Of a stretch of DNA of 64,000 bases, positions 16,301 through 61,699 are shown piece after piece; position 1 is the first letter of the stretch; each line of letters begins with the position of its first letter. The stretch comes from Takakia lepidozioides. Taxonomy: Eukaryota; Plantae; Bryophyta. The notes under the pieces are model-generated. The model had not been told where the DNA came from. It searched no databases and was given only the letters and a program-made list of their open reading frames with translations. Location: positions 46,066,001 through 46,130,000 of the forward strand of contig CM060731.1 of assembly GCA_030704615.1 (NCBI GenBank), given 5' to 3'. Both the position numbers and the translations under genes were made by a program.

Positions 16301-19300
16301 CTCTAAGCCAGATTATCCAGGGAAGGAAAAAAGAAGGGAAACCCACTTATGTTTTTTTCCTGGATGTCAAAAAGGCTCATGACACACTGTGGAGAGATGG
16401 CCTATGGTTCCGCCTCTGGTCTTGTGGAATCAAGGGAAAGATGTGGAGAGTTGTCCACAACTTGTATGCTCACACCAAAAGCTGTGTCACTGTTAACGGA
16501 CAGAAGTCCAACTTCTTTGACATAGACCAAGGTGTAGCTCAAGGATGTACTCTCTCCCCTCTGCTCTTCAATGTTTTCATCAATCAACTCCGCGAGGATG
16601 TGGAAAGTGAGGGATTTGGGTTAAGGGTGGGTGATACCACCATACCAGCCCTTATGTTTGCGGATGACTTCGCAGGCATAGGGGAGACTCCAACCAATCT
16701 CCAGGAGTTGATTGATTGCGCGAAGAGATACTTTGATCTTTGGGGCTAGAGGCTAATGTCAGCAAAGGGCAGTGGTAGCATTCAACGACAGAGGAGAGGG
16801 AGGAAGTGATCTTAAGTGGCAGTGGGGTAGCCAAGAGATCCCGGTCCTCCCTTCCTACACTTACCTGGGCGTTGAGTTTTCCTCCAATTGTAATTGGGAT
16901 GCACATATCCGGAAAGTTGTTCAAACTGGCAAGGGCAAAGCTCTGGGGCTCACTAAATTTTTCCACTGCAGAGGGGTCAACTCTGAGGTTAAGAAAACCA
17001 TTCTTTGTCGCGTTATTAGACCTGCCTTGGAGTACGGATCTGCTATATGGGTTGATAACTCCAACCAGGCTAAGTCTCTAGAATCCATTCAAGTGGGGGT
17101 GCTTAAGGAGTGTATGTCAGCATGCTCCAAAACAGCCAATGTGGCTGTTCGGGGTGAGTTTGGCATTCCGTCCTTAAGCTCCCGACGAGATGAATTCAAG
17201 GTCAGATGGTGGGGTCAGCTGCAACATATGCCCAACGCCTGGTTGGAGTTATCAACCCATACAGCAGATGCATACTCCAAGGCCAGCCTGATAATGCGGC
17301 AGATATCCTAAGTTAATCGACTTTATATCTTGGAAACAGGACCGCCCTGTCAAACAGGCTAAGTCCTGGCAGAAGAGAGTAGAAGAGATTCTCAAGGACC
17401 TGGACCTGGATCCGCAAGCCTTGACCCTGCTGGATAAATCTGACTCAGAGGCTGTAGTGTCCTCAGCCATGTCTGTTGCCATGAGATTGTCTGATGAAAA
17501 TGAAGTTAGGCAGAAAACTTCCCTGAACTTGTTTCCAGTCAGTGACATGGGGGAGGACATCTTGGATGACCTCAAGGGTCTACCCACTCTCGGCACTAGA
17601 CTGAAATTTAAACTCAGGGCTGGAAGCCTACCTTTGAACAGCAAACAGAAGCAGAGAGGAAAGGGAGAGTGCAATTGCCCGCTGTGTGGGCAATCTGAAG
17701 ACAGTATTCACTTTCCGATACACTGTCCGGGGTTCTCTCACCAAAGAGACGCTCTCTTCAAATCTATCAAGGGAATTGTGCCTGTACCCCTGTTTAACAA
17801 CTTTGAAAGTCTTGAGGCTGAGCCAAAAGCCCAGGCCCTCCTGAGGCCTAGTTTTTGGGCAAATCACACACAGCAGATTGATGCTTGTGTGAAGGGATTT
17901 CTAGAGGATATCTGGAAAACCCGGATTAATTCTATATATGATGGTAAGTCACACTACCAACGTCAGCCCCTGACAGAGGTAGGTTCTGTCCCTTTTGTTC
18001 CCGCTCAAACTGGGCGCGGGGTCAATGGCCACAAGGCTACGGCAAACAACGTCTTATGAGTACAATCTCTCCTCTAAAGAGATACTTTGATGTTTGGGGG
18101 CTAGAGGCCAATGTCAGTAAATGCGCAGTGGTGGCATTCAACGACCGGGGGGAAGGAGGAGGCGATCTCAAGTGGCAGTGGGAAGCCAAGAGATCCCTGT
18201 TCTCCCCTCCTACACCTATCTTGGCGTTGAGTTTTCCTCCAACTGTAATTGGGAAGCACATATTCAAAGAGTGGTTCAATCTGGCAAACGCAAAGCACTG
18301 GGTCTCACTAAATTTTTCCACTGCAGAGGATCAACTCTGAAGTAAAAAAAACCATCTTGAATCCATCCAAGTCGGGGTGCTCAAGGAGTGCATGTCAGCA
18401 TGCTTCAAAACAGCTAATGTGGCTGTTCGGGGTGGGTTTGGCATTCGTCCCTTAAGCTCCCGACGTGATGAATTCAAAATCAGATGGTGGGGTCAGCTGC
18501 AACATATGGATAATACCAGATATCCTAAGTTAATCGACTCTATATCTTGGAAGCAGGACCACCCTGTCAAACAGGCTAAATCCTGGCGGAAAAGGGTAGA
18601 AGAGATTTTCAAGGATCTGAATCTTAGTCCACTAGCCATGACCCTGCTGGATAAATCTGGCTTAGAAGCTGAAGTTTCCGAAGCCATGTCTATTGCCAGG
18701 AAATTGTCTGAAGAAAATGAAGTTAGGCAGAAAACTTCCCTCAACCTGTTTCCAGTCTGTGACATGGGTGAGGCCATCATGGATGACCTCAAGGGTCTAC
18801 CCACCCTCGGCACTAGACTGAAATTCAAACTCAGGGCGGGTAGCCTACCTTTGAACAACAAACAGTCGCAGAGAGGAAAGGGGGATTGTAAGTGCCCGTT
18901 GTGTGGGCAACCTGAAGACAATATTCACTTCCTGATTCATTGTCCTGGGTACTCTTACCAACGAGACACCCTCTTCCATTCCATCAAGGAAATTGTGCCT
19001 GTACCTCTGTTAACAACTTTGAAAATCTTGAGGCTGAGCCAAAAGCCCAGGCCCTTTTGGGGTCTAGCTATTGGGCAAATCACACACATCAGATTGATGC
19101 TTGTGTGAAGGGATTTCTGGAGGATATATGGAAATCTCAGATCAACGGTTTATTCCAAGGTAAATCATACTACCGGCGTCAGCCCCTGAAATGAAATGAA
19201 ACGGTGCTTTATAACGTCCGCGGAAAGCTCGTAGAGCTTATGGGACAAAATGGAAGAAAACATGAGAGAGGAACAAATCCAGAAACCACAATTAATGTTC

Positions 19301-36048: not shown

Positions 36049-36110
36049 TTTTATTTTTATTTTTTCAGAACAGGGGACAAGGGCCCCGGGGAATTTTATT
36101 AATAAGAAAA
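36049..36110 (-). mobile_element. 3' tail (poly-A) of an L1-like element, split from its body by the MULE
   Basis: T-rich run 36049-36065; the sequence resumes after the TSD at 51251; candidate TSD tgtacacat at 36041-36049 and 58072-58080. Confidence 0.7.
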
Positions 36111-38410
36111 GGAAGATAATAGGAATAATGTAAGAACTTAATGCAAGCGCGTCAGGACGGTCCAGCCCTGACACCCGTACCGCCGGTTCTTCGCCTCCGG
36201 CAGACATCGAAAGGCAGCCGGCTGGGCTCGGTCAATCCCTCCCCACCCCCCGCCCTCATCCCATCGGCGTCGTCACCCCAGGCGCGTCGTCGCCCCTGCG
36301 TCGTCGTTCTGCGACACCAGTCCGCCGCTTCCAGCAGTCCACCAGTTCCCTGTAACCCCCGCCCCGGGTTCAACCATCACCCCCATGTAACCCTCTGTAA
36401 CTCCGCCGAGTGTAACCCACACCACCGTGTAACCCTCTGTAACCCTATAACCCCATGACCCTCTGTAACCCTCACCACCATGTAACCCTCTGTAATCCAT
36501 GTAACCCTCTATAACACCGCAGAGTGTAACCCCCACCCCTATGTAACCCTCACTACATGTAACCCTCTGTAACCCATGTAACCCTCTATAAACACTGCAG
36601 AGTGTCACCCCCACCCCTATGTAACCCTCACTACATGTAACCCTCTGTAACACTTTGCAACCCATGTAACCCTATGTAACCCTCTGTAATCCATGTAACC
36701 CTCTGTAACACCGTAGAGTGTAACCCTCACTCCCTGTAACCCTCTATAACCCTTTGTAACCCATGTAATCCTCTGTGACACTCTGTAACCCATGTAACCC
36801 TCTGTGACCCTCTGTAACCCATGTAACCCTCTGTGACCCTTTGTAACCCTCACCACCATGTAACCCTCTGTAACACCGCAGAGTGTCACCCTCACCCTAT
36901 ATGTAACCCTCACTCCATGTAACCCTCTCTGACCCTCTGTAACCCTCCCCACCACATGACCCTTTGTAACCCATTTGTAACCCCTGTGACCCTCTATATC
37001 CCTCACCAGGTGTAACCCTTACCACCATGTAACCCTCTGTAACACCGCAGAGTGTCACCCTCGCCACCATGTAACCCTCACTCTATGTAACCCTCACAAA
37101 CCTTCTAAGGCTCTGTAACCCATGTAACCCTCTGTAACACCGCAGAGTGTCGCCCTCAACCCTTATGTAACCCTCACTCCATGTAACCCTCTATGACCCT
37201 TTGTAACCCTCACCACCATGTAACCCTCTGTAACACCGCAGAGTGTCACCCTCACCCCTATGTAACCCTCATTCCATGTAACCCTCTCTGACCCTCTGTA
37301 ACCCATGTAACCCTCTGTGACCCTCTATATCCCTCACCAGGTGTAACCCTTACCACCATGTAACCCTCTGTAACACCGCAGAGTGTCACCCTCTCCACCA
37401 TGTAACCCTCCGTAACCCTCACAAACCCTCTGTGACACCGCAGAGTGTCACCCTCATCCCATGTAACCCTCACTCCATGTAACCCTCACAAACCCTCTCT
37501 GGCTCTGTAACCCAATGTAACCCTCTGTAACACCGCAGAGTGTGTCGCCCTCACCCTTATGTAACCTCACTCCATGTAACCCTCTGTGACCCTTTGCAAA
37601 CCTCACCACCATGTAACCCTCTGTAACACCGCAGAATGTCACCCTCACCCCTATGTAATCCTCACTCCATGTAACCCTCTCTGATCCTCTATAACCCTCT
37701 GTAACCCATGTAACCCTCTGTGACCCTCTATATCCCTCACTAGGTGTAACCTTACCATCATGTAACCTCTGCTGTAACACCGCATAGTGTCACCCCATTC
37801 CCTATGCATCCTCACTCCTTGTAACCCATGTAATCCTCTGTGACCCTATGTAACCGTGTAACCCTCTGTGACCATGTGTAACCCATGAAACCCTCACTCC
37901 ATGTAACCCTCTGTGACCTCTATCTATAACCTCTCACCAGGGTGTACCTTCACCACCATGTAACCCTCAGTAACCCTCTGTAACACCGTAGAGTGTCACC
38001 CTCACCCCTGTGTAACCTCACTTCATGTAACCCTCTGTGACCCTTTGTGACCCTCTGTAACCCTCACCAGGTGTAACCCTCACCACCATGTAATCCTCCG
38101 TAACCCGTTTATCCCTCTGTAACACCGCTGAGTGTCACCCTCACTCCATGTAACCCTCCCATGTAACCCTATGTCACCCTTTGTAACACCATGTAACCCC
38201 ATGACCCTCTGTAACCCTTTGTAACATGTAACCCTCTGACTTCAGCCTTTAGCTCCGCCTCGTGTAACCCTCATTGTGCAACTCTCACATTGTAACCCAC
38301 CATGTAACCCTGATACTGTATCAATCCCCTCCGTGTAACCCCCGATTGGGTCACTCATAGCTCGTGTCACCCCGGATCATTATCCCCAACGCATGTCACC
38401 CCTGTTCGTG
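36111..38410 (+). repeat. Left TIR: ~240 bp unique GC-rich terminus plus ~2 kb modular (GTAACCCT) repeat
   Basis: Dense copies of tgtaaccct, gtcaccct and gtaacacc, with higher-order units such as tgtaacaccgcagagtgtcaccctcac. Confidence 0.92.
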
Positions 38411-38632
38411 TAGCCCCTTGGTGCCGGCAAAAATTGGCGGGCTCCAAGAGGTGTCAGATATTTTGAATTCAAACCTGGGTTACACGATTCGGTGACATCA
38501 ACACCCACGTGTAACTCCATCATCGCTCGTCATTTTCACCGGGTGCGTAGACGAGTGCAGTCCCGAGGGCTCCCGCTGCGTTGCCCGCGTGTGTTATCGA
38601 TTTGTACTGTATGGTGGTACTGTTGCTTGCTA

Positions 38633-41600
38633 ATGGCATGTGCTGCCGCGAAGGTGCTAGACGAGGAACGCAAAGCAGCATTAGAATCAAATGGTTTGAA
38701 GATAGGCGGGAGGAGGGAGAACTCTGTCATTTGCAGCATTTGGTATCTCATTTGAAATGCATCCTCCAGCTGCCCATAGACGGGCTTTTCAATCACACAA
38801 ACCTCCGTTGGATACGCCAGGTTTCCCAGGAAAGGGAAACGGATATCCATCGAAGTAGCTGTCATTCCATGGTCTAGCCTTCTGATTTTCTGGAGGGGAG
38901 GAGAAAGGAGGACCAGTGGATGGGAAGACCCAATTTTATCTTTCACAGATGCGAATTTTACCGTACAGTGATGTTGTCAGATTTGACAACACCGCGTGTG
39001 CAAAAGGTTACCGTCAGTGGCATAAGTAAGTCAACTTATGAGGGTTGTATAACATATCCCGCCCCGCCCACTTCTTTTTTGCTGGCCTAGCACAAGTCGT
39101 CGTATATGGCGATAACCCTCCTCGCTTTATATGCTTTTTGCAGGTACCACTGCTGCTACGGCCCGATAGATAGGCGACGGACCCGCCGATTGTGAAAGAG
39201 AAAGAAAACCGATAGCAGCCTCCGATAATCAACAAACCAGTCATACGCGAATCAGACGTTAAAGCAGCGGATTTCGGAGAGTCATACAAACGGGGTGGTT
39301 GTACGTGTAGCTTCAAAGTTGGCCAGTGTTTTCTAGATTCAGAGTTGGCAGTTGATCATCGCATACTTTCAAGAAATAGCATGTGGATGCAAAAGGAAAG
39401 CCATGTCTGGTTCAGCTGACCCTCTCTTCCTATTTCTCGCGATTCGTGACCATGCCCCTCGTTCTTTAGCCAGAAGATATGAAACGTGGTGGACGCGATA
39501 GTCTTCGCAGTGGCCTTATCTCCAGCTATGATTATGACACAACACACTCCACAGTTCCAGGAAGCTTGTGCGTGTCTCAGCCAGCATGGCATTGGAGTCA
39601 GCTTTATTGTTTATTGTTCGAGTACGATCGTGAGATAAAACATTGCCGGACACGCTGCGATTGAGAGTTACAAAAAAACATCCAGATGATGCATCAAAGT
39701 GTACGTATGTGGGTCGATAGCAATCCTGAAAGCGTCTTCTTCTTACATGAAGAGACATGCCGCCAGTGCGGGTGGTGGGTGATTTGAAGTTCGTAATTGG
39801 AATACAAACGGAGTGGCAAAAAAACAAGAAAAATGATCGACCTGGGACACAACCGTGTGGTATCGTGCGATTGCAACATTTGGGAACCAACGAATAAAAA
39901 ATAAGGTATTCGTGTCACGCTTTTCCCTTTCATTGCGTTCTGAAATGTGAGTGCCATGCAACTGTTGCCAATATATAACACTCACCTTATTAATTTTTGT
40001 ACCATTGCGACATTGCAGTTCCCAATGTATACCATGATGGTGTTCAACGAATGGCTCAACGGCATAATGTGGCTTATATTATATCAGCGAACACAAAACG
40101 AACTGACCTGAGCCCCTGGATTGAAACGTCTTCGCGACCGATCTTCAGAGCAAAACCAGATTGGAGGACCAAATGCTTTGGTTGTCGTCGATGCAGATGC
40201 AGAAATCATATCGCTATGTCAGGTACCTGGCTAGAAGTTACCAATGTTCTGAGTCACACAGTAATTCACACACACTGTGCATGCACGAGGGGTTTCATGT
40301 GATCGGGCTACACTGCTGCTAGTTTACACTGAGAATCACAGTAAGAGTTAAAAATCTGCCCAGTTACAGAGGGGGTGCATTGCTGCCCTGTAACACTTGG
40401 AGTTACACTGTCAGTTGCTTGAGGGGTACATGAATTGAGTTTGCAGTGCTGTCTGTTACACTGAGGGTTACACTATCAGTGTAGACGATGGTTATACTGC
40501 CTTGAGTTGGACGGAGGGTTACACTGCTGTGAGTTAGACCGAGGGTTACACTGCTATGAGGTAGAACAGGGTTACACTGTGAGTTACACTGGGAGTTACA
40601 CGACGTGTCATCCGCAAGTCCTGCATGGATTAGGTTGCACTGCTATAGCCTGTGAGTTACACTGGGCAGCATCGCAGAGGGTTGTATGGGTTGTTGGGTC
40701 GCTCTGAGGTTACACGGTTGTAACACGGATTGCGTTACAGCGCTCGAGGGGTTATATGGTTGGGTTACACTGCTGTGAGTTTCACTGATAGTTACATGAC
40801 CAGATGCACAAGGGGGTTACATGAGTACACTACTAAGTGTGACACTTTGACGAGTTACACTTCTACGAGTTACCACTGCGAAAGAGTTCCTCTGATAAGA
40901 GTTACACTGAAAGAGTTACATGATGGATTGGGTGGCATGATATGTGTGTGCGTGTAGGGAATCGTTTGGGACGTAGCGATATTCTACGCCTTGGAATGTT
41001 CGCCGCGCTTGGCTGAAACATTCGTGGCGTAAGATGCCCGATCCATACACTCGCAATGCTGTCTTGAAAAGCTTGGCGACGTAATGTACGGCATTAACGC
41101 TGTGTGTGGGAGTCACCCAGAAGAGTGGGGCGCTGGAGCGACTGGAAGATTTGAATTATTCATATCCGCTTGCGCGTGACTTCCTACATTCCATTAGAAT
41201 GGATGGGGTCCAAAACTGAGCATGTGATCACGGGGCTCGTTATATCCCCACGCAAGTCAGGATTACTAATGCCGCAATTGAATCTTGGCACGGAAATTTG
41301 AAGGCTCGTTTCGCCGGCGGAAAGCAAAGGCTTGATTTTTGGCAGGAGAATCGATTGGCTAATCAGCGACAACTCGTGGTGTCTGTTGTTTCAACCCACT
41401 ATTGTAGAGTATAGAGAGTAACTGAAATCGAAAAGGCTTCAAAAGGAAAATGTACGACAGAGGAGGAATTTATCAGTAATGTTGTTTGGACTGCAAGGAT
41501 GGATCCCTGATGTCATGTTCACTTGCCCACTGTTCCTGGTCGTCCCCGGCAATTGCGGATAGTGTTCAAAACGGCCGGTCGAAGCTAAACAATCTATGCA

Positions 41601-42080
41601 CCTGCGACCACCTGGGTTGTTGCGATTGTCCATGGGCTTGGAAGGGTAACTTGTGCAAACATCAAATCCGCGTTCTTCAATTGATTGTTGAAGCAAATCT
41701 GAAGGAAGGGCTTATTGTGAAGCTCTGTGGCACAAAGCTCGGGACATTCATGGAGGTCTTCACATGTTGATGAAATCGGAACTTCCAGATGCAGAGGAGG
41801 AAGTTGTGAATTAGCAGAGCCTACGGAGTGCTCAGCATCATCCCAGCGTGGTCGGCAGGAGCCATCGGATGTTTCATCAATTGAATCTGAGATGAAGTCC
41901 CTGTCGCTTCTTGGCAATGAGAGTGAAACAATGCGCAAACATTGCTTGCCGAGCTTCGTTGTGTGTGGGAGGCTGTCACTTTACAAGTTAGAATCGACAA
42001 AGGTCTCTTGCACCCTCTTCAAGCGTTCCATTCATAAAAAAATGATGATGGAAACAAAGTCCCTTGCCAGAAAGTAGATT
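38633..42080 (+). pseudogene. MULE transposase-like SWIM gene, intron-containing, many frameshifts
   Basis: Frame-hopping motifs: VIPWS..DF; YHCCYGP.D; KRG.CTCSFKV..HVDAKGKPC; IQTEWQ..GHNRVVSCD..FG; MMVFNEWLNG..AYIIS..PWIE..KPDWR..DADAEI; WNVRRAWLK; SWIM CDCPWAWKGNLCKH (41622-41663). GT-AG intron 40223-40957. Confidence 0.72.
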
Positions 42081-43477
42081 TTGTAGACCGGTTCCGTAGT
42101 AAGTGACCATTGAGTCCATTGGCAATGACACTTTTTTGTGATCACCAAGTTTAATATGAAGTACATGTTGTTCATGGGTTGTTATTCACTTTGCCATTCA
42201 TCCCACATTCAACCTATGTAACCCACTCAATGGGACACCCATGGGCCGGGGGGGGTACCGTGGGTGACACACGCGAAGGGTTCCACCGTCTGGGGTTCAT
42301 AACGTAACATAGTTCTTATTAGGGTAACTCGCATCTGTGGTACTCCACACAGTTTAACACAGATGAGTGTGAACCTCTTCAGTGTAACTCCAAGTGTAAC
42401 TGCAATGTAACTATCAACAGTGTAACCCAGTATGTAACCCATAGAATATTGCTGTCAGTGGTGTGTAACGATGAGAATTATAAGTCGATGATTACAATGT
42501 GACTACAGGGTCTTGGTTAGTCTGCCGGGGTTAACTGACCCTTCAATACAGAGTGGGAAGATGCTGAAGTCGAGCACCTTTAGTCACCAACACTAGCCCC
42601 TGTATGTGTAACCCCTCTATGTGTAACCCAATTTGTGTGTAACCCATGGACGTGTAATCCATGAGAAAGATAATCATTCCGTTCAACCTATGTTATGGAC
42701 CGTGTAGCCCTCCGGAGTGTAACTGGTTGTTGTGTAACCCCAAGAAGTATGTATCCCGACCACATGTACCCCCATTGATGTCACCCATCGCATGTAACCC
42801 ATTGTACAATTGGGGGTGCACGCTATAAAACCCCGATGCTACATCACCCATCTTATGTATCCCCACGACACGTAGCACTTGTATAGGCTACCTGCCCACT
42901 TTCATGTGCACAGTGTAACTTAGAACTGTGTAACCCTCTTGAGTGAGTGGACCCAAAGTGTTGTAACTCCAAGAAGTATGCAGCCCGACCAGATGTTACC
43001 CCCACACTATTGTGACCCCATCGTATGTAACCCATTGTACAGCCCTCATGTATGTAACCCCATGTAGTATAAATCTGAGAACTTCAGTTCACAAACACTT
43101 CAGTGCGAAAAAAAATAAAAATAAACAAATGCGCATAGTCGAGGTGGGGTTACATGCCACGAAGTATACTATTTCAGCAACGTGACCCTGACATAGCCAG
43201 GAAGGCCCAACCATGTAACCCTAGGCCCATGGTATGTAACCCATAAGTGTAACCCACGTTGTGAGACCCGGCATGGTGTAACCCATCACTTATGTGTGAA
43301 CCCCACAGAGTGTAAGCCCATTGCCCCGGGGCCAAAGGTGTACCCAAGTACTTGTCTATGATTCCACTCATGTAACCTTATAAGGTGTAACCCCATGTAA
43401 GCCCATGCATGAAACCCAAACTGTGAAGTGTACGAAAACAAACCACATAGAAGCAAAAATGCATCAAGAGACGTTAT

Positions 43478-46400
43478 TTATTTCTTTGGCCATCTGACCA
43501 AGTCTTTGTCCATCTCGTCACACAGCCAACTAATCATATGAGTACGGGAAGCTATCATGGTTGACTCGTTGAACCAACTTGCAGTAAACGCCCGCCTATG
43601 ACGGGTTCGATCTTCTGTGGTTTTCACATTGAACTTCCACTCAAAGTAAAATTGCACAAAAACAAAGTGCATAATAGCGCTCCCAACAGCTCCGTTGCTG
43701 GGGGACATGGCCTCAAACCATTCCATCCTCTCCATGACGTAACTGAAGTCATCGATCCAGGCATGAAATCAAAGAACGCTATGGCAAAATTTCGCAAAAT
43801 TCCTTCAATGAGTTTGGGTCGGGCAATGGTTTTATGGGAGTCCAAATGTACTATCCGACCTCGGCGCTCTAAAACAGCAACACTCCAGTGATCACTGCAA
43901 CACAAACAAAGCCGTTACGTCAGAATAGAAAAAAACATCTCCAATGAAACCCATTGTGGTTGTAACCCAGTAGTGTAACCCTTTGTACTGCTAACTCTAA
44001 ACGGTGTTAAACAACTAGTCAGCAGTCACTAGTGCAACTCAGTCTAGAATAGAGGAGTGTAACCCAACATGCTCAGTCAACGCTGAAATTACTTACTCGA
44101 AGACAATAGGGATGACAACCACGTCACAAGATCTCGATTCTTTGTGAACACCATCCCTCGGGCATCCTGAGTGTACCATCCTTGCACCAACCCGAATAGC
44201 GTCTGCAGATCGTTACCATTGGTACGCATGACATGCCATTGGAAAGGAGCACAGATGACAAACGCAGGTGCGATAGCCTTAAACAATTGGCCTCCAGAAG
44301 TTGTTGTAACCCGAGAGCAATGCATCTGTGACAGTTGCTCTTATTTTTATACATCGCTCAAAATCTGTCTCTTCCAAGTAAAACTGTAACGGACTAGAAG
44401 CCAGGAAGGCATCGTCATAATAAAACTTCACTTCGGGCGCCCCAGGAGGTCCGACACCATTCTGAACTTTGTCAAGTACCGTTGTTTTAGTCCTGCACAA
44501 CAAACCGCACATTACGAACATTACGATGCATCATACAAGAGTTATAATCAATATTCAAAATCAGAGAGGATCAAAGTACAATGAGGTACCTCGAACGCTC
44601 CCCGCAAATGCTTGGCAAGGACCTCTTGCTGCTGGACAACGTCAAACGCAGAGACTCCTGCACTTTTTGGCCTTCGGTTTGGTTTCGCTGTTTTTTGGGT
44701 GCGACAAGAACATATTAATCTTGTCAGCGCTAGGGGGTTCAGCCAACCGCTTTCTTTGAGCAGGCAGGCCGTTTTTTGACCTCCTGGGATTCTCTGCAAC
44801 CCTGACAATGCCGCCGGGTAGGGGGAATTTCTGAGCCAGAGGTGCCTTGTTCTGAGTTTGTTGCAAGTGCTGAAGACTGCACTTCCTTGTCTAAGACGTG
44901 CTGGGGAGGTGATTGACCAAGGCAGAAGTGTCACAGCTCACCTCCTCGGTGCTACCCTGTCGGTGTCACCCTTCTGTTCAAACCCCTTGTCAGAGTCACG
45001 CTTCTTAGTGTCACCCTTCTCTTCGGCTACCTCCTCAGTGTCACGATTCTCAGTGTCCCTTCTTCGGCTTCCTTCTCAATGTAACCCTTCTTCTTCGGCT
45101 ACCTCCTCAGTGTCACTCTTCTTAGTGTCACCCTTTCTCTTCGGCTACCTCCTCAGAGTCACGATCTCAGTGTCACCCTTCTCTCCGGCACCTTCTCAGT
45201 GTCACTGGTCTCAGTGTCACCCTTCTCTTTGGCCGCATTAACAGTGTCACTCTTCACAGTGTCACCCTTCTCATTCACAGTGTCACCCTCAGGTGCAGTG
45301 TAACCCTCGGTTTCAGGGCATCCTCCCTTGTGCAGTGTCACCCTGCGCATCAATGGGACCCACGAAGGCTGGGTCATTCTGAGAGAGGTTGACCACATGA
45401 TCCTGACAATACTTACATTGCTGCATCGAGGGTTCAAAACCAGCATCTCCAGATTCAAAAGTCATACACAGACTCTGGGTCGAGCGGGTCCCTGATTCTT
45501 CGATTAAGACCTTCAAAGAAAATGACTGGGGCTGCGGACAAAGAGGTTCGCACTTGGTGTTCCACCTTGATGTATCATCTTCAGTATCAGTATCAGAATT
45601 CATGGGCAAATCCCGCGTCAAGTCTGCTAGGTTCACCCCTAAGTGCAGCTGGGTTGAGTACAATTCACCAACCTGCGACAAAGATACAACGGCAGATTGA
45701 CTTGGAATGATGTCATCGTCATGTACATCGTCGCTCTGCGGGGCGGGGAAATTGGCCCATCGCTCGTCTGCGCGCCCCCTGCGCCCCCTGCATCGCATTG
45801 TGGAGGGGCCCCATACACAACTTCGTGAAGCTCACGTTGAGCCTCGAAAAAGGTTTTTGAACGCATTGGCGACTTGATTGGTCATGAGCTCGGACTCATC
45901 TGCATCGGGGAAAAGACAAAGGTTTTTAGTCGTGGAACGAGGTTTGAAAGTGCAAGGGTTACACTATGTAAGGTTACACTGACTAGGACAAGACAGTGGT
46001 TCGGATTACACGATGTGGGTTACACCACCCTGTTAGAGACAGTAGTTTGCAATGGGTTACACTACCATGGGTTACACTACTGAGATTACACAACGAGAGG
46101 GTAACAAATCTAGGGTAACACAACGAGGGGTACCATTAGGGGTACACTGATTACAGGGTTACATACTCCGAGGGTTACACTGATTACAGGGTTACACACA
46201 GCGAGGGGTACATGAGTACAAGGTTCCACATAGCGAGGGTACACTGATTACAGGGTTACACACAACGAGGGTTACACTGAGTTACAAGGTTCCACATAGC
46301 AAGGGTTACAATGATTACAAGATTACACACAAAGGGGTTACACGACAAGAGGGGTGACAGTGGATGGAGTAACACTTACAGAGATACCGGCACTACAGAC

Positions 46401-48312
46401 CCAAGGTCTCTCATATACTGGATGCCCAAACGCGCATTGAAGTCCATTTTTGTTGGTGATTCGCTGAAGAGGCCACAACACCAAAGCTGGATAAACGATT
46501 CTCTCTATTGGATCGTAAAGTGATGGGCGACGCGACGACGGCTTGCCTTGCAAAACTGTATAGCTCCGTTGATCTTAATTGACCGGTCACCCCACTCTTC
46601 TGTATCAAACTCGATCTTAAGTCTTCGAGCTCAGAATCCAAGGTCGCAATTCCGTCACCAGGTTGTGCAAAGTACATCAGACTAAAGCCGTAATACTCAT
46701 CGACCAGGTCCTTACCTTTGAGGCCGTAAGAGCACTTTCCAGAAGTTCACTCGTGAACCCCAACCTGGGATGCATTTGGGAAACTGACCTGCCATGATTT
46801 CTTACATCGTTGTGGGCCAGAATTCTCAAAAGGAGTGGTGGTGGTCCAATGTGCGGTTTGGTGAGATTCTCCATTTGACTGATCAATCCTTCGGCAAAAC
46901 CACGAGTGAATTCCAACGGATCTGGAAACAACCAAACCTTGATTCCATCTACAGTAATAGTGATGACAAGAGGATTTGAAGTTCTGGCATCGTCAGGTCG
47001 GTATTGCCAACAGCTAGTTCGTCCATCGTGTCATCATCATGTGAGGCTTGGCTCTCTCGATGGACTCGTGTAAGTCTCCCACCTTTTTTCTTTTTCTGCT
47101 TTGGCATGTCAGGATGCCCAATGCTCTCTAAATACTCCTTCACCGATTCAATTCCTCTATCATTAACGGACCATGATCCGGCTGGGCAGTAAACGCCTTG
47201 TGGGAGCAACAACACTGTCCATATCATCGCTTCTAAGATGATATCGAGCTCCCTGCGCAATACAGCGTGAGGGGGTTACACCAGAGAAAAGGGTTACAGC
47301 ACGAGGGGTTACACATGAAAATGGGTTACAAACAAGATGGGCTACACGGGGTTACACAGAGGTGGGTTACACACCATAGGGGTTTTTAAAAAGGGTCCTC
47401 TGTAGGTGGGTTACACGCCACAGGAGAGACAGGGGGGGTAACACAGGGGTTACATGGATAGACAACAGCCCAAAATTTGAAAAACAGGAGAAAATGGCAG
47501 GGAATCCAACTTGATTGTCTGTCGATAGAACCCAACTTGATTTTGCAGTTGTCGCATGGACTGCGCCCTGCCTCGCGCAACAAATTCTTGAATGCTGCCA
47601 AAACCCCTTCAAATCATTGGAATGACAGGAAATGGGAACTGCAGACAGAATAAGGCCATGCGCGCAGCAGAAGATTGATCCTGGAGTTCGCTTTCGCAAG
47701 ATGAACCTTGAGCTCCGGTTTTCCCCGGTTTCCAATGTTGATTTTCTTTGCAATAGGGATAGGTAGAGGCGGGCTCAATCGCCGCTTGTCTCTCTCGTTA
47801 GAAACCTGCCGAATAGAAGGACCAGGGACAGAAACAGCAGGAGCATCAGAAGATGGAACCTCTGTAGCAGAAATAGCCGAAGAAGGTACAACAGCAGGCA
47901 CTTCAATAGGATCTGCAATCTCACCCTATTTTGCAGAATCCATGCATGATATGCATCAACAGAAGAAGCTGGAACAGAATTCATTCACATTTTCAACAGC
48001 CATGGCATGCTTGAGCTCCGCATTAGGAAACGGTTTTGTTCCTTTCGGTCTGGCCATACATGCGGCCATTCCATCGACAATATGCCGATTCAATCTGCTC
48101 TTATCTACCTTTACTGCCCCACAATAAAGACATTTGAACTTAGGCCGGCCCTTTGCTCCCTCCACCTTGGCCTCTCTACACCTGGTGTGGCAGTACGCGA
48201 TCATTGTAGCATGCTCATGCTCAGTGTACCAGAAGCGAACTCGTTCGCCATCCCTTTTCAAGTGATCAAATGGAATAGTAGCCTCTCCAGGGAACAAATA
48301 ACAATCAGCCAT
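43478..48312 (-). pseudogene. Second MULE gene, convergent with the transposase: N-terminal Zn finger, acidic linker, C-terminal Ulp1/C48-like protease; multi-exon and degraded
   Basis: MADCY..FKCLYCG..LNRHIVDGMAAC; GT-AG introns ~45900-46379 and ~43896-44095; DHWSVAVL..IVHLDS and PQQRSCWE at 43680-43895 resemble the Ulp1 H/D/Q-C motifs. Confidence 0.55.
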
Positions 48313-49560
48313 GACAAAAGAAAAAACTGACAGAAGAGAAGAGAAGAGCAAGAGCAAGAAAAGACAAGACAAGAAAAGACCAAGACCAAGAGAATTCCGA
48401 AGAACGCACAACATGGAGCACGCACAGCAAGGAGTGCAGGAAGAATAGGAAAGGCTGCGAGAAGGGGAAAACTGAACAATGATCAAAGAACGAAGAACGA
48501 AGCTAGCTAGATGTCACCCGTAAGGCACGTCGGTTAAGCGAAAGACGGCGGTTCATTAAAATCTGGCGGCTTGCAATCAATTATATCCGCACTGACTCAC
48601 ACGTGTATGAGTTGCAATCCCGGTGTCACCCGGAATAGCGGAGTGTAACCCGTAACCCTACTCTTGTGAGCGCGACAAACCGGCCGTTACCGCATGCCAG
48701 GCACGTCAAGTGTAAACCTCCGTCAGGTACCCACATATGATGTAACCCTTCGTCACAACCTCATGTGCCCCTAGTCTATGTGACCCCCGAACACAACATC
48801 GATGTAACCCTGTCATATCAAACCATTAGTATGCAACCTCCAGGTAAACATGGTCAATGTAACGCCCCACCCATGTAACCCTAGCCTATGTGGCTCCGCG
48901 AGCGCAACATCCACGTAACCCATCAAACATGTCAACCCCATCTAAACTTCCATTACTAAAACGTCTACCAAGCCAGCATGTATTGAGAAAGAAAACACCG
49001 TGTAACCCCCTGTGTGTAACCATAGCACACGTGAGGTAGTCTTATAAACCATCAGACATGTAACCGGTTGACAGTGCTTGCAAAACACGCATGATTCGAT
49101 ACGTATTGCATCCATAATTAGCGATGAGTAGGCTGCCCCGACTGGTGTGTGAACAAAAGATACACGAGAGGAGAATGAATGGGCACCCCGTCAAATGAGC
49201 GGCTGCTTGCATGGCTAGACGCGAAAGAAACAAAACTTTTCCTAATGCGGATCTTAGGAATACCATAGCCATCGGGGGACGGTGACAAAACAACAAAATG
49301 ACATTGACAAAGAAAAAGAAAAAGAATAGAGACAACCGTATCAATCGTAGAGAAAACCGTAGTAATAGATTTGACGGATCGTGGCACGGAAAGCGTTGTC
49401 TTGTATGTTGCTGGGATGACGATACTGAACTGAATGAACTACAAATCTTTCGCATTGATGTGTGAAGCCGATTGGGCGCCATGGGAATTGTAGAAAGCTG
49501 ATGCCCCAAAGCAAAAAAACGAGCGAGCTAGGAATCTGAAAAATGGATGGAGAGAGCAAA

Positions 49561-49590
49561 TTAGGGTTTCGGCCTCTATTTAAACCTCCA
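49561..49590 (-). promoter_or_regulatory. TATA-like box plus telobox just inside the right TIR, candidate promoter of the minus-strand gene
   Basis: Minus strand reads tttaaatagaggccgAAACCCTAA, followed by a CT-rich tract. Confidence 0.35.
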
Positions 49591-49627
49591 TTCGGCCGTC
49601 GGATAGTTTACACGTGTATGATGTATT

Positions 49628-51241
49628 CGAGGCGGTGTGTTACAGAGGGTTAATAGGTTACAGAGGGTTCAATGGTGGTGAGGGTTACAAAGGGTCACAG
49701 AGGGTTACATGGGTTATAGAGGATTACATGGAGTGAGGGTTACATAAGGGGTGAGGGCGACACTCTGCGGTGTTACAGAGGGTTACATGGGTTACAGAGC
49801 CTTAGAGGGTTTGTGAGGGTTACATGGTGGCGAGGGTGACACTCTACGGTGTTACAGAGGGTTACATGGTGGTAAGGGTTACACCTGGTGAGGGATATAG
49901 AGGGTCACAGAGGGTTACATGGTGGTGAGGGTTACAGAGGGTCAGAGAGGGTTACATGGAATGAGGGTTACATAGGGGTGAGGGTGACACTCTGCGTGTT
50001 GTTACGAGGGTTACATGGTGGTGAGGGTTACAAAAGGGTCATAGAGGGTTACATGGGTTACAGAGGGTTACATGGAGTGAGGTTACATAAGGGGTGAGGG
50101 TGACACTCTGCGGTGTACAGGAGGGGTTACATGGGTTACAGAGCCACAGAGGGTTACATGGAGTGAGGGTTACATGGGATGAGGGTGACACTCTGCGGTG
50201 TCACAGAGGGTTTGTGAGGGTTACGGAGGGTTACATGGTGGCGAGGGTGACACTCTGCGGTGTTACAGAGGGTTACATGGTGATAAGGGTTACACCTGGT
50301 GAGGGATATAGAGGGTCACAGAGGGTTACATGGGTTACAGAGGGTTACATGGTGGTGATGGTTACAGAGGGTCAGAGAGGGTTACATGGAATGAGGAGGT
50401 TACATAGGGGTGATGGTGACACTCTACGTGTTACAGAGGGTTACATGGTGGTGAGGGTTACAAAGGGTCACAGAGGGTTACATGGAGTGAGGGTTACATA
50501 AGGGTGAGGGCGACACCTGCGGTGTTACAGAGGGTTACATGGTGGTGAGGGTTACAAAGGGTCACAGAGGGTTACATGGATTACAGAGGGTCACAGAGGA
50601 TTACATGGATTACAAAGGGTTACTGAGGGTTACATGGAGTGAGGGTTACACTCTGCGGTGTTACAAAGGGTTACATGGGTTACAGAGGGTTACATAGGGT
50701 TACATGGGTTGCAAAGTGTACAGAGGGTTACATGTAGTGAGGGTTACATAGGGGTGTGGGGGTGACACTCTGCGGTGTTATAGAGGGTTACATGGGTTAC
50801 AGAGGGTTACATGTAGTGAGGGTTACATAGGGGTGGGGTGGGGTGACACTCTGCGGTGTTATAGAGGGTTACAGATTACATGGTGGTGAGGGTTACAGAG
50901 GGTCATGGGGTTATATGGGTTACAGAGGGTTACATGGGGGTGGTTGTGGCTTACACTCGGCGGAGTTACAGAGGGTTACATGGGGGTGATGGTTGTTGAA
51001 CCGGGGCGGGGGTTATAGGGAACTGGCGGACTGCTGGAAGCGACGGACTGGTGTCGCAGAACGACGACACGCCTGGCCGACGACGCCGATGGGATGAGGG
51101 CGGGGGTGGGGAGGGATTGACCGAGCCCAGCCGGCTGCCTTTCGATGTCTGCCGGAGGCGAAGAACCGGCGGTACGGGTGTCAGGGCTGGACCGTCCTGA
51201 CGCGCTTGCATTAAATTCTTACATTATTCCTATTATCTTCC
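49628..51241 (-). repeat. Right TIR: (AGGGTTAC) modular repeat plus unique terminus
   Basis: Reverse complement of the left arm; ORF 50966-51211(-) mirrors ORF 36141-36458(+). Confidence 0.92.
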
Positions 51242-51250
51242 ATAAGAAAA

Positions 51251-55627: not shown

Positions 55628-56127
55628 NNNNNNNNNNNNNNNNNNNNNNNNNNNNNNNNNNNNNNNNNNNNNNNNNNNNNNNNNNNNNNNNNNNNNNNNN
55701 NNNNNNNNNNNNNNNNNNNNNNNNNNNNNNNNNNNNNNNNNNNNNNNNNNNNNNNNNNNNNNNNNNNNNNNNNNNNNNNNNNNNNNNNNNNNNNNNNNNN
55801 NNNNNNNNNNNNNNNNNNNNNNNNNNNNNNNNNNNNNNNNNNNNNNNNNNNNNNNNNNNNNNNNNNNNNNNNNNNNNNNNNNNNNNNNNNNNNNNNNNNN
55901 NNNNNNNNNNNNNNNNNNNNNNNNNNNNNNNNNNNNNNNNNNNNNNNNNNNNNNNNNNNNNNNNNNNNNNNNNNNNNNNNNNNNNNNNNNNNNNNNNNNN
56001 NNNNNNNNNNNNNNNNNNNNNNNNNNNNNNNNNNNNNNNNNNNNNNNNNNNNNNNNNNNNNNNNNNNNNNNNNNNNNNNNNNNNNNNNNNNNNNNNNNNN
56101 NNNNNNNNNNNNNNNNNNNNNNNNNNN
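55628..56127. other. Assembly gap, 500 N
   Basis: Run of N. Confidence 1.
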
Positions 56128-59040: not shown

Positions 59041-61699
59041 ATGTTTTCAAAAAAATCCAGGCTTGTCAGCGTAAAATGTCTAGAACTTGGACTCCAAATT
59101 GGCATGCAGAGAGCTCCGGCTTCAACTCTGGAATCAGACGCAGTCGTCTGTTCGACAATGGAGTGGCGGAAAGGGTGTCGGTCTTGGCACCTCCATCACC
59201 ACCACTACTACAAGAGGAAAGCAGCTTGAAAAAGCAGAGAGGCATGGAGGTCACAACGACTCTTTTGCAACCAGTGGGGATGTCATCTCACTGTGTAAGG
59301 AAGGACGATTGAAGGAGGCACTGCGCATTTTGGACCTTATGGTCCAACGAGGCATTCGAGCAGACTCTGCGGCCTATGCCAGTCTCTTGCAGGGCTGTGC
59401 CAAAACAAAAGCTCTGGCAGATGGGAAGGAAGTCCATGCCCAAATGGTCAAAAGCGGATTCCAGCCAGACATCTTGCTAGTGAACAACCTTCTCAGCATG
59501 TATGCCAAGTGTGGGAGTGTTTTGGATGCACGTCAACTGTTCGATAAAATGCCCAAACGGAATGTGGTCTCATGGACCGCAATGATTGCAGGATTTGCTC
59601 AGCATGGTTACAATGAAGAGGCTTTTGAACTCTTTCAGCAAATGCAACAAGTAGGTGTTAAGCCAAACAAGATCACCTTCACAAGCATCCTGAATGCATG
59701 TGCCAGCCCCACGGCTCTGGGACGGGGCAGGCAGGTGCATGCCGACATCATCAAAGCCGGATTTGAGTCGGCTGTTCATGTGGGAACTGCGCTCACCAGC
59801 ATGTATTTCAAATGTGGGAGTGTGGTGGATGCCTGCCAAGTGTTCAACAAAATGCCTGAACGAAATGTGGTCTCATGGAATGCAATGATTGGAGGATTTG
59901 TTCAGCATGGTCACTACGAAGAGGCTTTTGATTTCTTCGAGCAAATGCAATGGAATGGTGTGAATCCAGACAGGTTCACCTTTGTTGGCCTCCTTAATGC
60001 ATGTGCCAACCTAGCAGCCCTGGAAGAGGGCAAAAAGGTCCATACCCACATCATTGAAGCTGGATTGGTATCAGATGTCTTTGTGGGGACTGCACTAGTC
60101 AGCATGTATGCCAAATGTGGGAGTGTGGTGAATGCCCGCCAAGCATTTGACAAGATGCCGAAACAAGATGTGGTCTCATGGACTGCAATGATTGCAGGAT
60201 ACACTCAGCAAGGGTATAGTGAAGAGGTTTTCATACTTTTCGAGCAGATGCAACAAGTAGGCATCAGGCCAAACAAAGTTACCTTGACTAGCATGCTCGG
60301 AGCTTGTGCCAGCCCAGCAGCTCTGCAACAAGGCAAGCTGGTCCATGACCACATCATCAGAGCTGGATTCCACTCGGATGTTGGTGTCGGGACTGCCCTT
60401 GTCAACATGTATGCCAAGTGCGGGAGTGTGGCAGATGCACGCCTAGTGTTTGACAAGATGCCAAGACGGAATGTGGTCTCCTGGACTGCCATGATTGCAG
60501 GATATGCCCACCATGGTCATGGTGAGGAGGCTTTTGAACTCTTTCTGCAAATGGAACGAGAGGGCGTGCAACCAAACAAGATCACCTTCATAATTATTCT
60601 CAATGCATGTGCTGGCTTAGCAACCCTGGAAGAGGGCAAGCAGGCTCACGTCCTTTTAATTCAAGCTGGACTTGAAACAGATATCTGTGTACAGAATGCT
60701 CTTGTCAGCATGTATGCAAAGTGCGGGAGTGTCACAGATGCACGCCAAGTGTTTGACAAAATGCCTGAGCGAGATGTGGTCTCCTGGAATGCGATAATTG
60801 CAGGATATGCACAGCATGGGGATGGCAAAGAGGCCATTCTACTCTACAAACAGATGCAACAGGGAGGGTTGCCCCCAGACGAGGTTACTTTCATTGGTGT
60901 CCTCTCTGCATGCAGTCATTCAGGCCTAGTAGATGAAGGACATTATTACTTCAGTTCGATGAGCAGAGATCACAGCCTCGTACCAACAGAAAAGCACTAC
61001 AGCTGCATGGTTGGCCTTCTTGGCAGGGCAGGGCGCCTGGATGAGGCTAAAGATTTTGTCCGCAGAACCCCATTTGAGCTTGGTGCTTTAGGGTGGGGGG
61101 CATTGCTTGGTGCATGCAGAGTTCATGTCAATGTCGAGCTAGCAGAACATGCAGCTGAATGTAAGCTCAGGTTGGAGCCAGAAAATGCTGGAGTGTATGT
61201 GATACTATCAAACATCTATGCCGCAGCTGGCAGATGGGACGATGTAGCAAAAGTGAGAAAAATTATGGGGAACAGAGGTCTGAGTAAGGAGCCAGGGCGC
61301 AGCTGGATTGAGATTAAGAACAGGGTGCATGTATTTGTTGCGGAAGATAGATCACACTTACTAACAGAAGAGATCTACGTGGAGTTGGAGAACCTAACTG
61401 GGAAAATGAGGAAGGCAGGGTATGTACCGGACACACGCTTCGTGTTGCATGATGTGGATGAGAAGCAGAAGGAATGGGCTGTCTGCCACCACAGCGAAAG
61501 GCTGGCCATCGCATTTGGGCTCATCAGCACACCCCCTGGAACATCTATTCAAATCATCAAGAACTTGCGCATATGTGGCGACTGCCACACTGCCTCCAAA
61601 TACATCTCAAAGATTGTTGGACGAGAAATTGTTGCAAGGGATGTCAACCGCTTTCATAAGTTCAAGAATGGGGTGTGTTCATGTGGGGATTATTGGTGA
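59041..61699 (+). CDS. PLS-class pentatricopeptide repeat protein with E and DYW cytidine deaminase domain (organellar C-to-U editing factor), intronless
   Basis: 870-aa ORF with ~101-aa P-L-S periodicity (MYAKCGS..FDKMP..VVSWTAMI); PG box PGRSWIE; HSERLA and CGDCH Zn ligands; ends CSCGDYW. The start is inferred at ATG 59041 across a probable 1-nt error; first in-frame ATG is 59339. Confidence 0.95.

Follow-up and report, generated by a model that had tools for sequence, protein, structure and literature searches.

Here, we report that a 15-kb Mutator-like DNA transposon of the moss Takakia lepidozioides, located at 36111–51241 of a 64-kb stretch of contig CM060731.1 (the whole stretch is called the window hereafter, and coordinates refer to it unless another contig is named), carries about 180 copies of a word of 8 to 9 bases, RTGTAACCC, which fill the foldback ends of the element and its non-coding interior alike. 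The element is a member of a high-copy, foldback-type family of Mutator-like elements (MULEs). On balance, we think it probable that an element-encoded protein, likeliest the N-terminus of the transposase, binds RTGTAACCC, and that the word was multiplied in the ends for transposition and in all non-coding compartments for self-specific regulation. Please note that we infer the binding of a protein to the word, the identity of its reader, the effect of binding and any anti-silencing role from sequence.

The word and the ends of the element

An earlier annotation made from the letters of the window (the original prediction) had claimed that GTAACCC is dense in the element and essentially absent from the flanks, and the counts bear this out. 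GTAACCC has 189 matches in the 64-kb window against 5.5 expected from shuffles (shuffle maximum, 11), and 188 of the 189 fall within 36352–50979; the 8-mer TGTAACCC occurs 181 times inside the element and not once in the 48 kb outside. The bases beyond the 7-mer anchor are also fixed at the interior sites, position −1 being T in 54 of 56 and position −2 a purine in 50 of 56, so that the full word is R-TGTAACCC (RTGTAACCC). The ends of the element, with their target site duplications (TSDs) and terminal inverted repeats (TIRs), consist of the following features.

36102–36110, no strand: left TSD, ATAAGAAAA, read directly, identical to 51242–51250
36111–36350, plus strand: left TIR tip, unique and motif-free, G+C 0.64, CpG observed/expected 1.08
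36351–38350, plus strand: left subterminal array, 75 TGTAACCC copies, every one on the plus strand, in the dialect CATGTAACCCTC
49640–51000, minus strand: right subterminal array, 52 TGTAACCC copies, every one on the minus strand
51001–51241, minus strand: right TIR tip, complementary to the left tip
51242–51250, no strand: right TSD, ATAAGAAAA, a perfect 9-bp match to the left copy

The termini lie at 36111 and 51241, and the outermost 140 nt of the arms are 99% complementary (left tip versus 51102–51241). MULEs have a TSD of 8–11 bp, typically 9, beside their TIRs, and the perfect 9-bp ATAAGAAAA stands at both ends here, as had been predicted. The arms align across about 1.6 kb at 81% identity; the left one extends to about 38350 (2.24 kb), and the right one begins at about 49640–49680. 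Each arm is built of a unique G+C-rich tip of 240 nt and then an array of the word, 2.0 kb long on the left and 1.4 kb long on the right. Spacings in the left array are mostly 9–10, 16–17 and 20 nt, and the array is also organized into higher-order units of about 95, 191 and 393 nt. Such long TIRs, in which subterminal tandem repeats lie behind a unique terminal motif, are those of a foldback (type 2) element, and the long TIRs that had been described as built from the motif are thus foldback arrays of 1.6/2.2 kb with 75 and 52 copies. Canonical G-quadruplex patterns, taken as four G3 runs with loops of 1–7 nt, are concentrated in the same place: 16 of the 22 in the window lie in the TIR arms and one in the interior, and the arm stretches that hold them, 36237–38179 (C strand) and 49682–51115 (G strand), carry the word every 9–10 nt.

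The CpG observed/expected ratio is 0.9–1.1 in the coding parts of the element (38401–42103) and in the TIR tips versus 0.41–0.43 in the flanks. This contrast in composition would reflect either a young family or an escape from long-term CG-methylation decay.

Interior blocks of the word

A map of TGT[AC]AC[CT]C resolves seven interior clusters, one orientation each. The original prediction had listed interior blocks with an orientation that switches from block to block; they are found at the places it gave, each cluster being uniform in itself, and a seventh block (B4) is added to that list.

B1, 40223–40957 (motif cluster 40400–40960), motif on the minus strand: transposase intron, GT..AG, with a 27-nt tandem unit
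B2, 42104–43480 (cluster 42200–43400), plus strand: spacer between convergent genes, 17 motif copies, 16 of them on the plus strand
B3, 43915–44330 (cluster 43900–44320), plus strand: sparse, 4 motif copies on the plus strand
B4, 44984–45310, plus strand: 15-nt tandem repeat of the one-off variant GTGTCACCC
B5, 45950–46345, minus strand: 11–12 motif copies on the minus strand, with a 33-nt tandem unit
B6, 47270–47455, minus strand: 8 motif copies on the minus strand in 190 nt
B7, 48480–49010, plus strand: 7 motif copies on the plus strand, upstream of a minus-strand open reading frame (ORF)

The core word is the sole element that the blocks have in common. When each of the seven is taken separately, its commonest 8-mer is GGGTTACA or a one-off variant, yet the longest match of any block to the TIRs or to another block is at most 27 nt, and the repeat units differ (15, 27 and 33 nt). 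The copies of B2 are mostly dispersed, each in a unique context. There are also dialects: the arms use CATGTAACCCTC, the interior uses (CA)GTGTAACCC or GAGTTACAC, B1 in particular uses GGGTTACACTG and GAGTTACAC, and the B4 variant GTGTCACCC occurs in the TIR unit as well. An origin of the blocks as nested miniature inverted-repeat transposable elements or solo-TIR insertions was considered and ruled out, the blocks being without similarity to the TIR tip or arrays.

Both promoters of the element adjoin motif arrays, and coding sequence is avoided. The k-mer comparison that the original prediction had proposed, inside against outside and exon against intron, came out as the 181 versus 0 given above and as 0 of 54 interior sites in coding sequence defined by ORF runs or homology, 4.36 kb in all (binomial P = 3e-12); when just the transposase exons backed by homology are counted, the avoidance has P = 5e-5.

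Two observations on single blocks are added here. The minus strand of B4 (44984–45310) is open throughout and, if coding, would be predicted to give KGDTE-like tandem peptide repeats; tandem peptide repeats in variable regions have likewise been reported for VANC proteins. Contigs of runs X6 and X7, which we guess to be RNA, share just 30 nt with B3, at 43961–43990, and their flanks hold more copies of GTGTAACCC and ATGTAACCC in different surroundings. Transcription may therefore occur from other loci, or from diverged copies, that carry the same word, if our guess at the nature of these runs is right.

Transposase gene and its intron

The plus-strand gene of the element has the following features.

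38900–42103, plus strand: transposase gene with a provisional start, the MULE core at 39944–40222, the C-terminal half at 40958–42103 and a SWIM finger at 41615–41746
about 39216–39416, plus strand: putative WRKY/GCM1-like Cys-His stretch, a by-eye reading

A SWIM zinc finger at the C-terminus is common among plant MULE/FAR1-type transposases. The CxCx(n)CxH pattern of the SWIM finger is intact, and the exon at 41480–41767 that carries it matches 17 proteins of a representative library; the Pfam model SWIM (PF04434) scores this exon at E = 0.003 and 17.5 bits, just below the gathering score of 19.6. Apart from this sub-threshold SWIM match, exon-wise Pfam scans of the element returned nothing. 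Two homologous proteins helped to delimit the gene. P0001 (393 aa) is colinear with 40923–42103, and P0002 (443 aa), in which Pfam recognizes MULE (PF10551) at E = 1.9e-6, aligns to 40037–40240 and then to 40992–41746. The window exon pieces alone do not reach Pfam MULE, and the domain is seen through the homologue P0002; the conserved TNAAIESWHGNLK stretch is present in the window transposase. The identity of the element as a MULE, which had been predicted, is thus upheld by the TIRs and TSD, the SWIM finger and a homologue with Pfam MULE.

The segment 40223–40957 has GT..AG ends and splits a MULE domain that is contiguous in both P0002 and P0001. This confirms the intron that the original prediction had placed there, and the intron is block B1.

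Copies of the family and state of the window copy

P0001 is encoded on a Logan contig of SRR15431198, a Takakia lepidozioides sample, which agrees with the seed-free plant host that had been proposed. This contig (L001), which is independent of the window, is 92.7% identical to 40527–42126, intron and exon together, and includes B1. In the organism's own DNA run, contigs span all of 42150–48149 at a word depth of about 2000, with variant contigs near 50 (word depth is not a copy number), and a run labelled "plant metagenome" spans the same 42150–48149 with contigs of 2414, 1817 and 1540 nt. Blocks B2–B6 accordingly lie within the depth-~2000 contigs of the own DNA run and within 1.5–2.4-kb contigs of the second data set, and for B5 the cover is a 1817-nt Illumina contig from run X5. 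The family is clearly present in multiple copies, and the interior blocks are part of its consensus. A later insertion of an independent satellite, which the original prediction had named as a possible refutation, is not what we find, as B1 is present in L001 and the other blocks named here are present in the family-consensus contigs.

Compared with P0001, the window copy has stops and many frame changes. Its differences from the Illumina contigs of two data sets are mostly one-base indels; of the 12 indels listed, 10 alter the length of a homopolymer. Most of the listed contig pieces contain more gap letters than substitutions, and the alignment with L001 has 80 gap letters among its 1638 columns. 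Since the indels mainly change homopolymer length with respect to two Illumina data sets, they point to long-read assembly error, and most frameshifts of the window copy are probably of this origin. We did not accept that the copy is a long-dead pseudogene, the differences being mostly single-base homopolymer indels. The assembly is probably under-polished at 42150–48149 and 40527–42126, in a high-copy repeat. Frameshifts in repeat-borne genes of this genome are not to be taken as decay without a check.

Sister lineages and their words

The sister set consists of contigs from ENA/JGI metagenomes that encode related transposases, with gene calls that ignore introns. The original prediction had asked whether sister families use different motifs; their enriched words do differ, and the word class follows the transposase tree. 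The transposase of L005 is 42% identical to P0001 over 340 aa, and this contig has 19 copies of TGTAACC versus 0.49 expected, with the consensus TTGTAACCA; L016 has 7 versus 0.2 expected. L002 (6914–17230) is a 10-kb element with TIRs of about 330 nt and a convergent gene layout like that of the window element, and its word is CATGTTAC (YGTAACATG), found 13 times versus 0.59 expected and 13 of 13 times inside the TIR-bounded element. L013, with TIRs at about 7249–7559 and 17036–17353, uses CGAGACR, 45 copies versus 3.45 expected and 44 of the 45 inside the element; L009, L015 and L006 use the same word. In both sister elements with mapped TIRs (L002 and L013), the word is therefore essentially confined to the element. 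On the transposase tree, the CGAGAC clade has supports of 93/97 and 100/98, and P0002, P0005 and P0013, which go with GTAAC words, form a clade supported at 88/92.

The transposase is the sole protein shown to be common to all these lineages. Accessory ORFs are kept within the CGAGAC clade and are weakly alike between L002 and L009, and the accessory ORFs of L002, L009 and L013 match neither the window nor any Pfam family.

As observations on these contigs in their own right, L013 7249–17353, L009 6140–17713 and L002 6914–17230 are three TIR-MULEs of 10–11.6 kb with a transposase and convergent orphan accessory genes, each with its own element-confined short word (CGAGACR or YGTAACATG). L013 and L015 are identical here, and an in-frame stop at L013 8793–8795 separates ORFs that are joined as a 328-aa product in the L015 call. 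CAGCATG in L012 was considered as an element motif and ruled out, being spread across the entire contig. A metagenome scan for the TIR motif dimer gave two chance single matches only, in L007 and L008.

Minus-strand ORFs and the rest of the window

The minus-strand ORFs of the element are fragmentary; two of them bear on the Zn-finger/Ulp1 protein that the original prediction had proposed as a possible reader.

43627–43914, minus strand: candidate Ulp1 (peptidase C48)-like exon with a His/Asp box, a language-model match
47959–48393, minus strand: 145-aa ORF with an ATG start and a single C-x2-C-x12-H-x7-C finger; of the minus-strand ORFs, it lies closest to the right TIR

For the exon at 43627–43914 alone, the language-model match places 91 of the 100 nearest named Atlas clusters in Peptidase_C48, with a top score of 0.92, and the ORF at 47959–48393 has a weak C2H2-like match (E = 0.08). 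For Ulp1, Pfam, PDB and a homologue search were all blank, and an Atlas search of the second supposed exon gave nothing usable; the downstream piece at 43481–43768 (minus strand) seems, by eye, to be without the catalytic Cys. Atlas and homologue searches of the Zn-finger ORF were likewise blank. A PDB sequence search of five minus-strand pieces gave no match or a weak C2H2 match. With respect to VANC, the same five pieces had 0 matches in PDB, which is expected to include VANC21 (9LNK), the ORFs being indel-fragmented and partly searched. Three homologous-protein searches with short exon queries were blank, and with such queries, only short proteins were eligible.

Outside the element, an intronless 870-aa ORF at 59087–61699 (plus strand) encodes a pentatricopeptide repeat protein with an E motif and a DYW deaminase domain (PPR_2, E = 2e-116; DYW, E = 8e-43). 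Proteins of this type are organelle RNA-editing factors, and the gene is in keeping with a land-plant (bryophyte) host. There is a 500-N scaffold gap at 55628–56127, and an Rfam scan of the entire window gave no match.

Discussion

In the mechanism that we propose, a DNA-binding protein encoded by the element would recognize R-TGTAACCC as its cognate site. The first candidate for this reader is the N-terminal DNA-binding region of the SWIM-type transposase, and the second is the orphan Zn-finger protein on the minus strand; the transposition ends are full of the word as well, so that the transposase itself may be what reads it. Some 50–75 sites per arm would load many protein molecules, aiding synapsis and excision. 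The word would have been multiplied by local tandem duplication and then retained in every non-coding compartment (intron, convergent spacer, both promoter-proximal regions and the gaps that separate minus-strand ORFs), and the protein would therefore coat the entire element. The purpose may be self-specific transcriptional activation or protection from silencing, like that of VANC on VANDAL21 or of the AtMu1c transposase on its TIRs, without a VANC homologue. More tentatively, and as a possibility that we hold with some reserve, this may extend to the SWIM-type TIR-MULE clade: a VANC-independent self-recognition in which the transposase or an orphan accessory protein reads a lineage-specific word of 7–9 nt that is spread element-wide over ends, promoters, introns and spacers, word and protein co-diverging, and in which the word serves as a mark of self for activation or anti-silencing.

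Several points weigh against this proposal. The element was found in no RNA run searched. A Pfam scan of the N-terminal pieces of the transposase gave nothing, the putative DNA-binding domain being a by-eye reading, and the predicted fold of a sister transposase N-terminus, computed with no alignment, failed at a pLDDT (predicted local distance difference test) of 36. The transposase tree does not place the window family, and the accessory genes co-segregate with the transposase, so that the tree cannot separate the two candidate readers. Moreover, the sister words are dispersed, in both orientations and partly within called ORFs, and strict coding avoidance and arrays are therefore special to the window family.

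The interior copies could also be a neutral by-product, the word being only a subterminal transposase site and its interior copies functionless, either relics of the TIR array that moved inward or chance seeds amplified by slippage. In such a route, aberrant gap repair would move TIR-array DNA inward, and replication slippage would then act where selection is lax. Several blocks are indeed tandem repeats, tolerated by non-coding DNA, depth peaks above some repeats, and foldback arrays are recombinogenic, the arm lengths differing by 0.7 kb. However, beyond the core no block is similar to the TIR arrays, the interior dialect is GTGTAACCC and the TIR dialect CATGTAACCCTC, and the 17 sites of B2 sit in unrelated flanks with the 9-nt core nonetheless exact. 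The same word recurs in seven separate arrays with different units, and sister elements without foldback arrays are also enriched element-wide in their own word, all of which makes a neutral origin unlikely in our judgment.

We give a far smaller chance to the telobox idea that the original prediction had offered as its alternative, namely that host Myb/TRB-type proteins are drawn to the element by the likeness of the word to telomere or telobox DNA (AACCCT; TTAGGG repeats contain the 7-mer AGGGTTA). The TIR dialect GTAACCCT includes AACCCT, the arrays are strongly strand-asymmetric and 16 of the 22 canonical G-quadruplex patterns lie in the two arms, as such mimicry would have it, but T follows CCC in just 12–64% of interior-block sites, the non-telomeric T-G-T ahead of AACCC is invariant, and the sister words YGTAACATG and CGAGACR are without telomere likeness; the words track the transposase tree, which argues for an element-encoded reader rather than a shared host reader. 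About as little weight falls to a structural or RNA role, in which the arrays would act not as protein sites but through foldback hairpins, G-quadruplexes or hairpin small RNAs that tune silencing or replication. The inverted arms are 1.6–2.2 kb long, G-quadruplex patterns are concentrated in them, and the interior blocks occur in both orientations, so that their transcripts could pair. Yet the interior spacings of 15–33 nt and more leave almost no G-quadruplex pattern there, pairing between blocks is limited to 8–9 nt, the flanks being unrelated, and exact conservation of a 9-mer is predicted by a sequence-specific reader, not by structure alone.

An element-encoded reader has its closest parallel in the Arabidopsis element VANDAL21 (Hiun), likewise a MULE with a transposase and accessory genes, and in its anti-silencing factor VANC21 (Hosaka et al. 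2017, PMC5735166; Sasaki et al. 2023, PMC10398659). VANC21 targets lie in introns and upstream regions with one orientation per cluster and grow as tandem repeats (Hosaka et al. 2017, PMC5735166). The moss element shares with them a short word (9 nt in VANDAL21) in introns and upstream regions, single-orientation clusters and tandem-repeat growth, and also a high word density unique to the family, with different words in related families. However, VANDALs are non-TIR elements, and this element has foldback TIRs of 1.6–2.2 kb made of the same word. Binding and hypomethylation have been demonstrated for VANC21; for the moss element, we infer both. VANC itself is reported to be dicot-specific and derived from a MAIN/PMD-like host protein (PMC13547354). 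Given the long TIRs, and with VANC not found in the pieces searched, the element is not a VANDAL, though it may work like one.

The ends resemble those of Muta1 (Aedes; Liu and Wessler 2017, PMC5499845), Tm1 (Meloidogyne, PMC3169594) and FARE (Arabidopsis; Windsor and Waddell 2000, cited in both), which have a 9-bp TSD, a MULE transposase and composite TIRs where a unique tip precedes many short subterminal repeats. Experiments on Muta1 showed that its subterminal repeats are required for cleavage and that transposase binding and excision both increase with the number of repeats (PMC5499845). The TIR of Muta1 is 145 bp long and has a 12-bp repeat in 9 copies, whereas the moss element has 50–75 sites per arm over 1.6–2.2 kb. 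In the available parts of the sources on these three elements, the repeat is described in the TIRs only, and introns or interior spacers go unmentioned there.

The AtMu1c transposase and TnpA of En/Spm are element-encoded DNA-binding proteins that recognize reiterated sites of their own family, reduce methylation at these sites and switch on transcription (Sasaki et al. 2026 preprint, 10.64898/2026.08.24.746577), and the same mechanism is proposed here. The TnpA sites of En/Spm are subterminal. By itself, the AtMu1c transposase is sufficient to bind its TIRs, to hypomethylate them and to activate cognate copies, with peaks at the TIRs only (same preprint); in the moss element, by contrast, an intron and a convergent spacer of 1.2 kb are filled with sites as well. 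Kaonashi (KIU) MULEs, for their part, carry Ulp1, and this element too may have a captured Ulp1/C48-like gene next to its transposase. Kaonashi elements are non-TIR MULEs of angiosperms, and their capture has been dated to around the split between monocots and eudicots (Hoen et al. 2006; review, PMC13317346). A moss capture would be independent, and the Ulp1 call here comes from a single exon, with the catalytic Cys seemingly missing by eye.

What is new is the combination of the same word in foldback ends and throughout the non-coding interior, an early-diverging moss host, and word turnover in sister lineages. Sequence-specific anti-silencing by transposons is known from one dicot-specific family (VANC) and, more recently, from reports on the AtMu1 and Spm proteins in Arabidopsis. 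For annotation of the Takakia genome, the word provides a clear signature of a high-copy DNA transposon family. If our reading is true, the idea of transposases as intrinsic sequence-specific regulators would gain a natural test set of four words paired with four related transposases, and since the words are short, exact and confined to their families, binding swaps between lineages could map the recognition code. The same target architecture without VANC would then make self-recognition by a reiterated word an old and recurrent solution of Mutator-like elements, and element-wide motif saturation would be an ancient, convergent MULE strategy rather than a speciality of dicot VANDALs.

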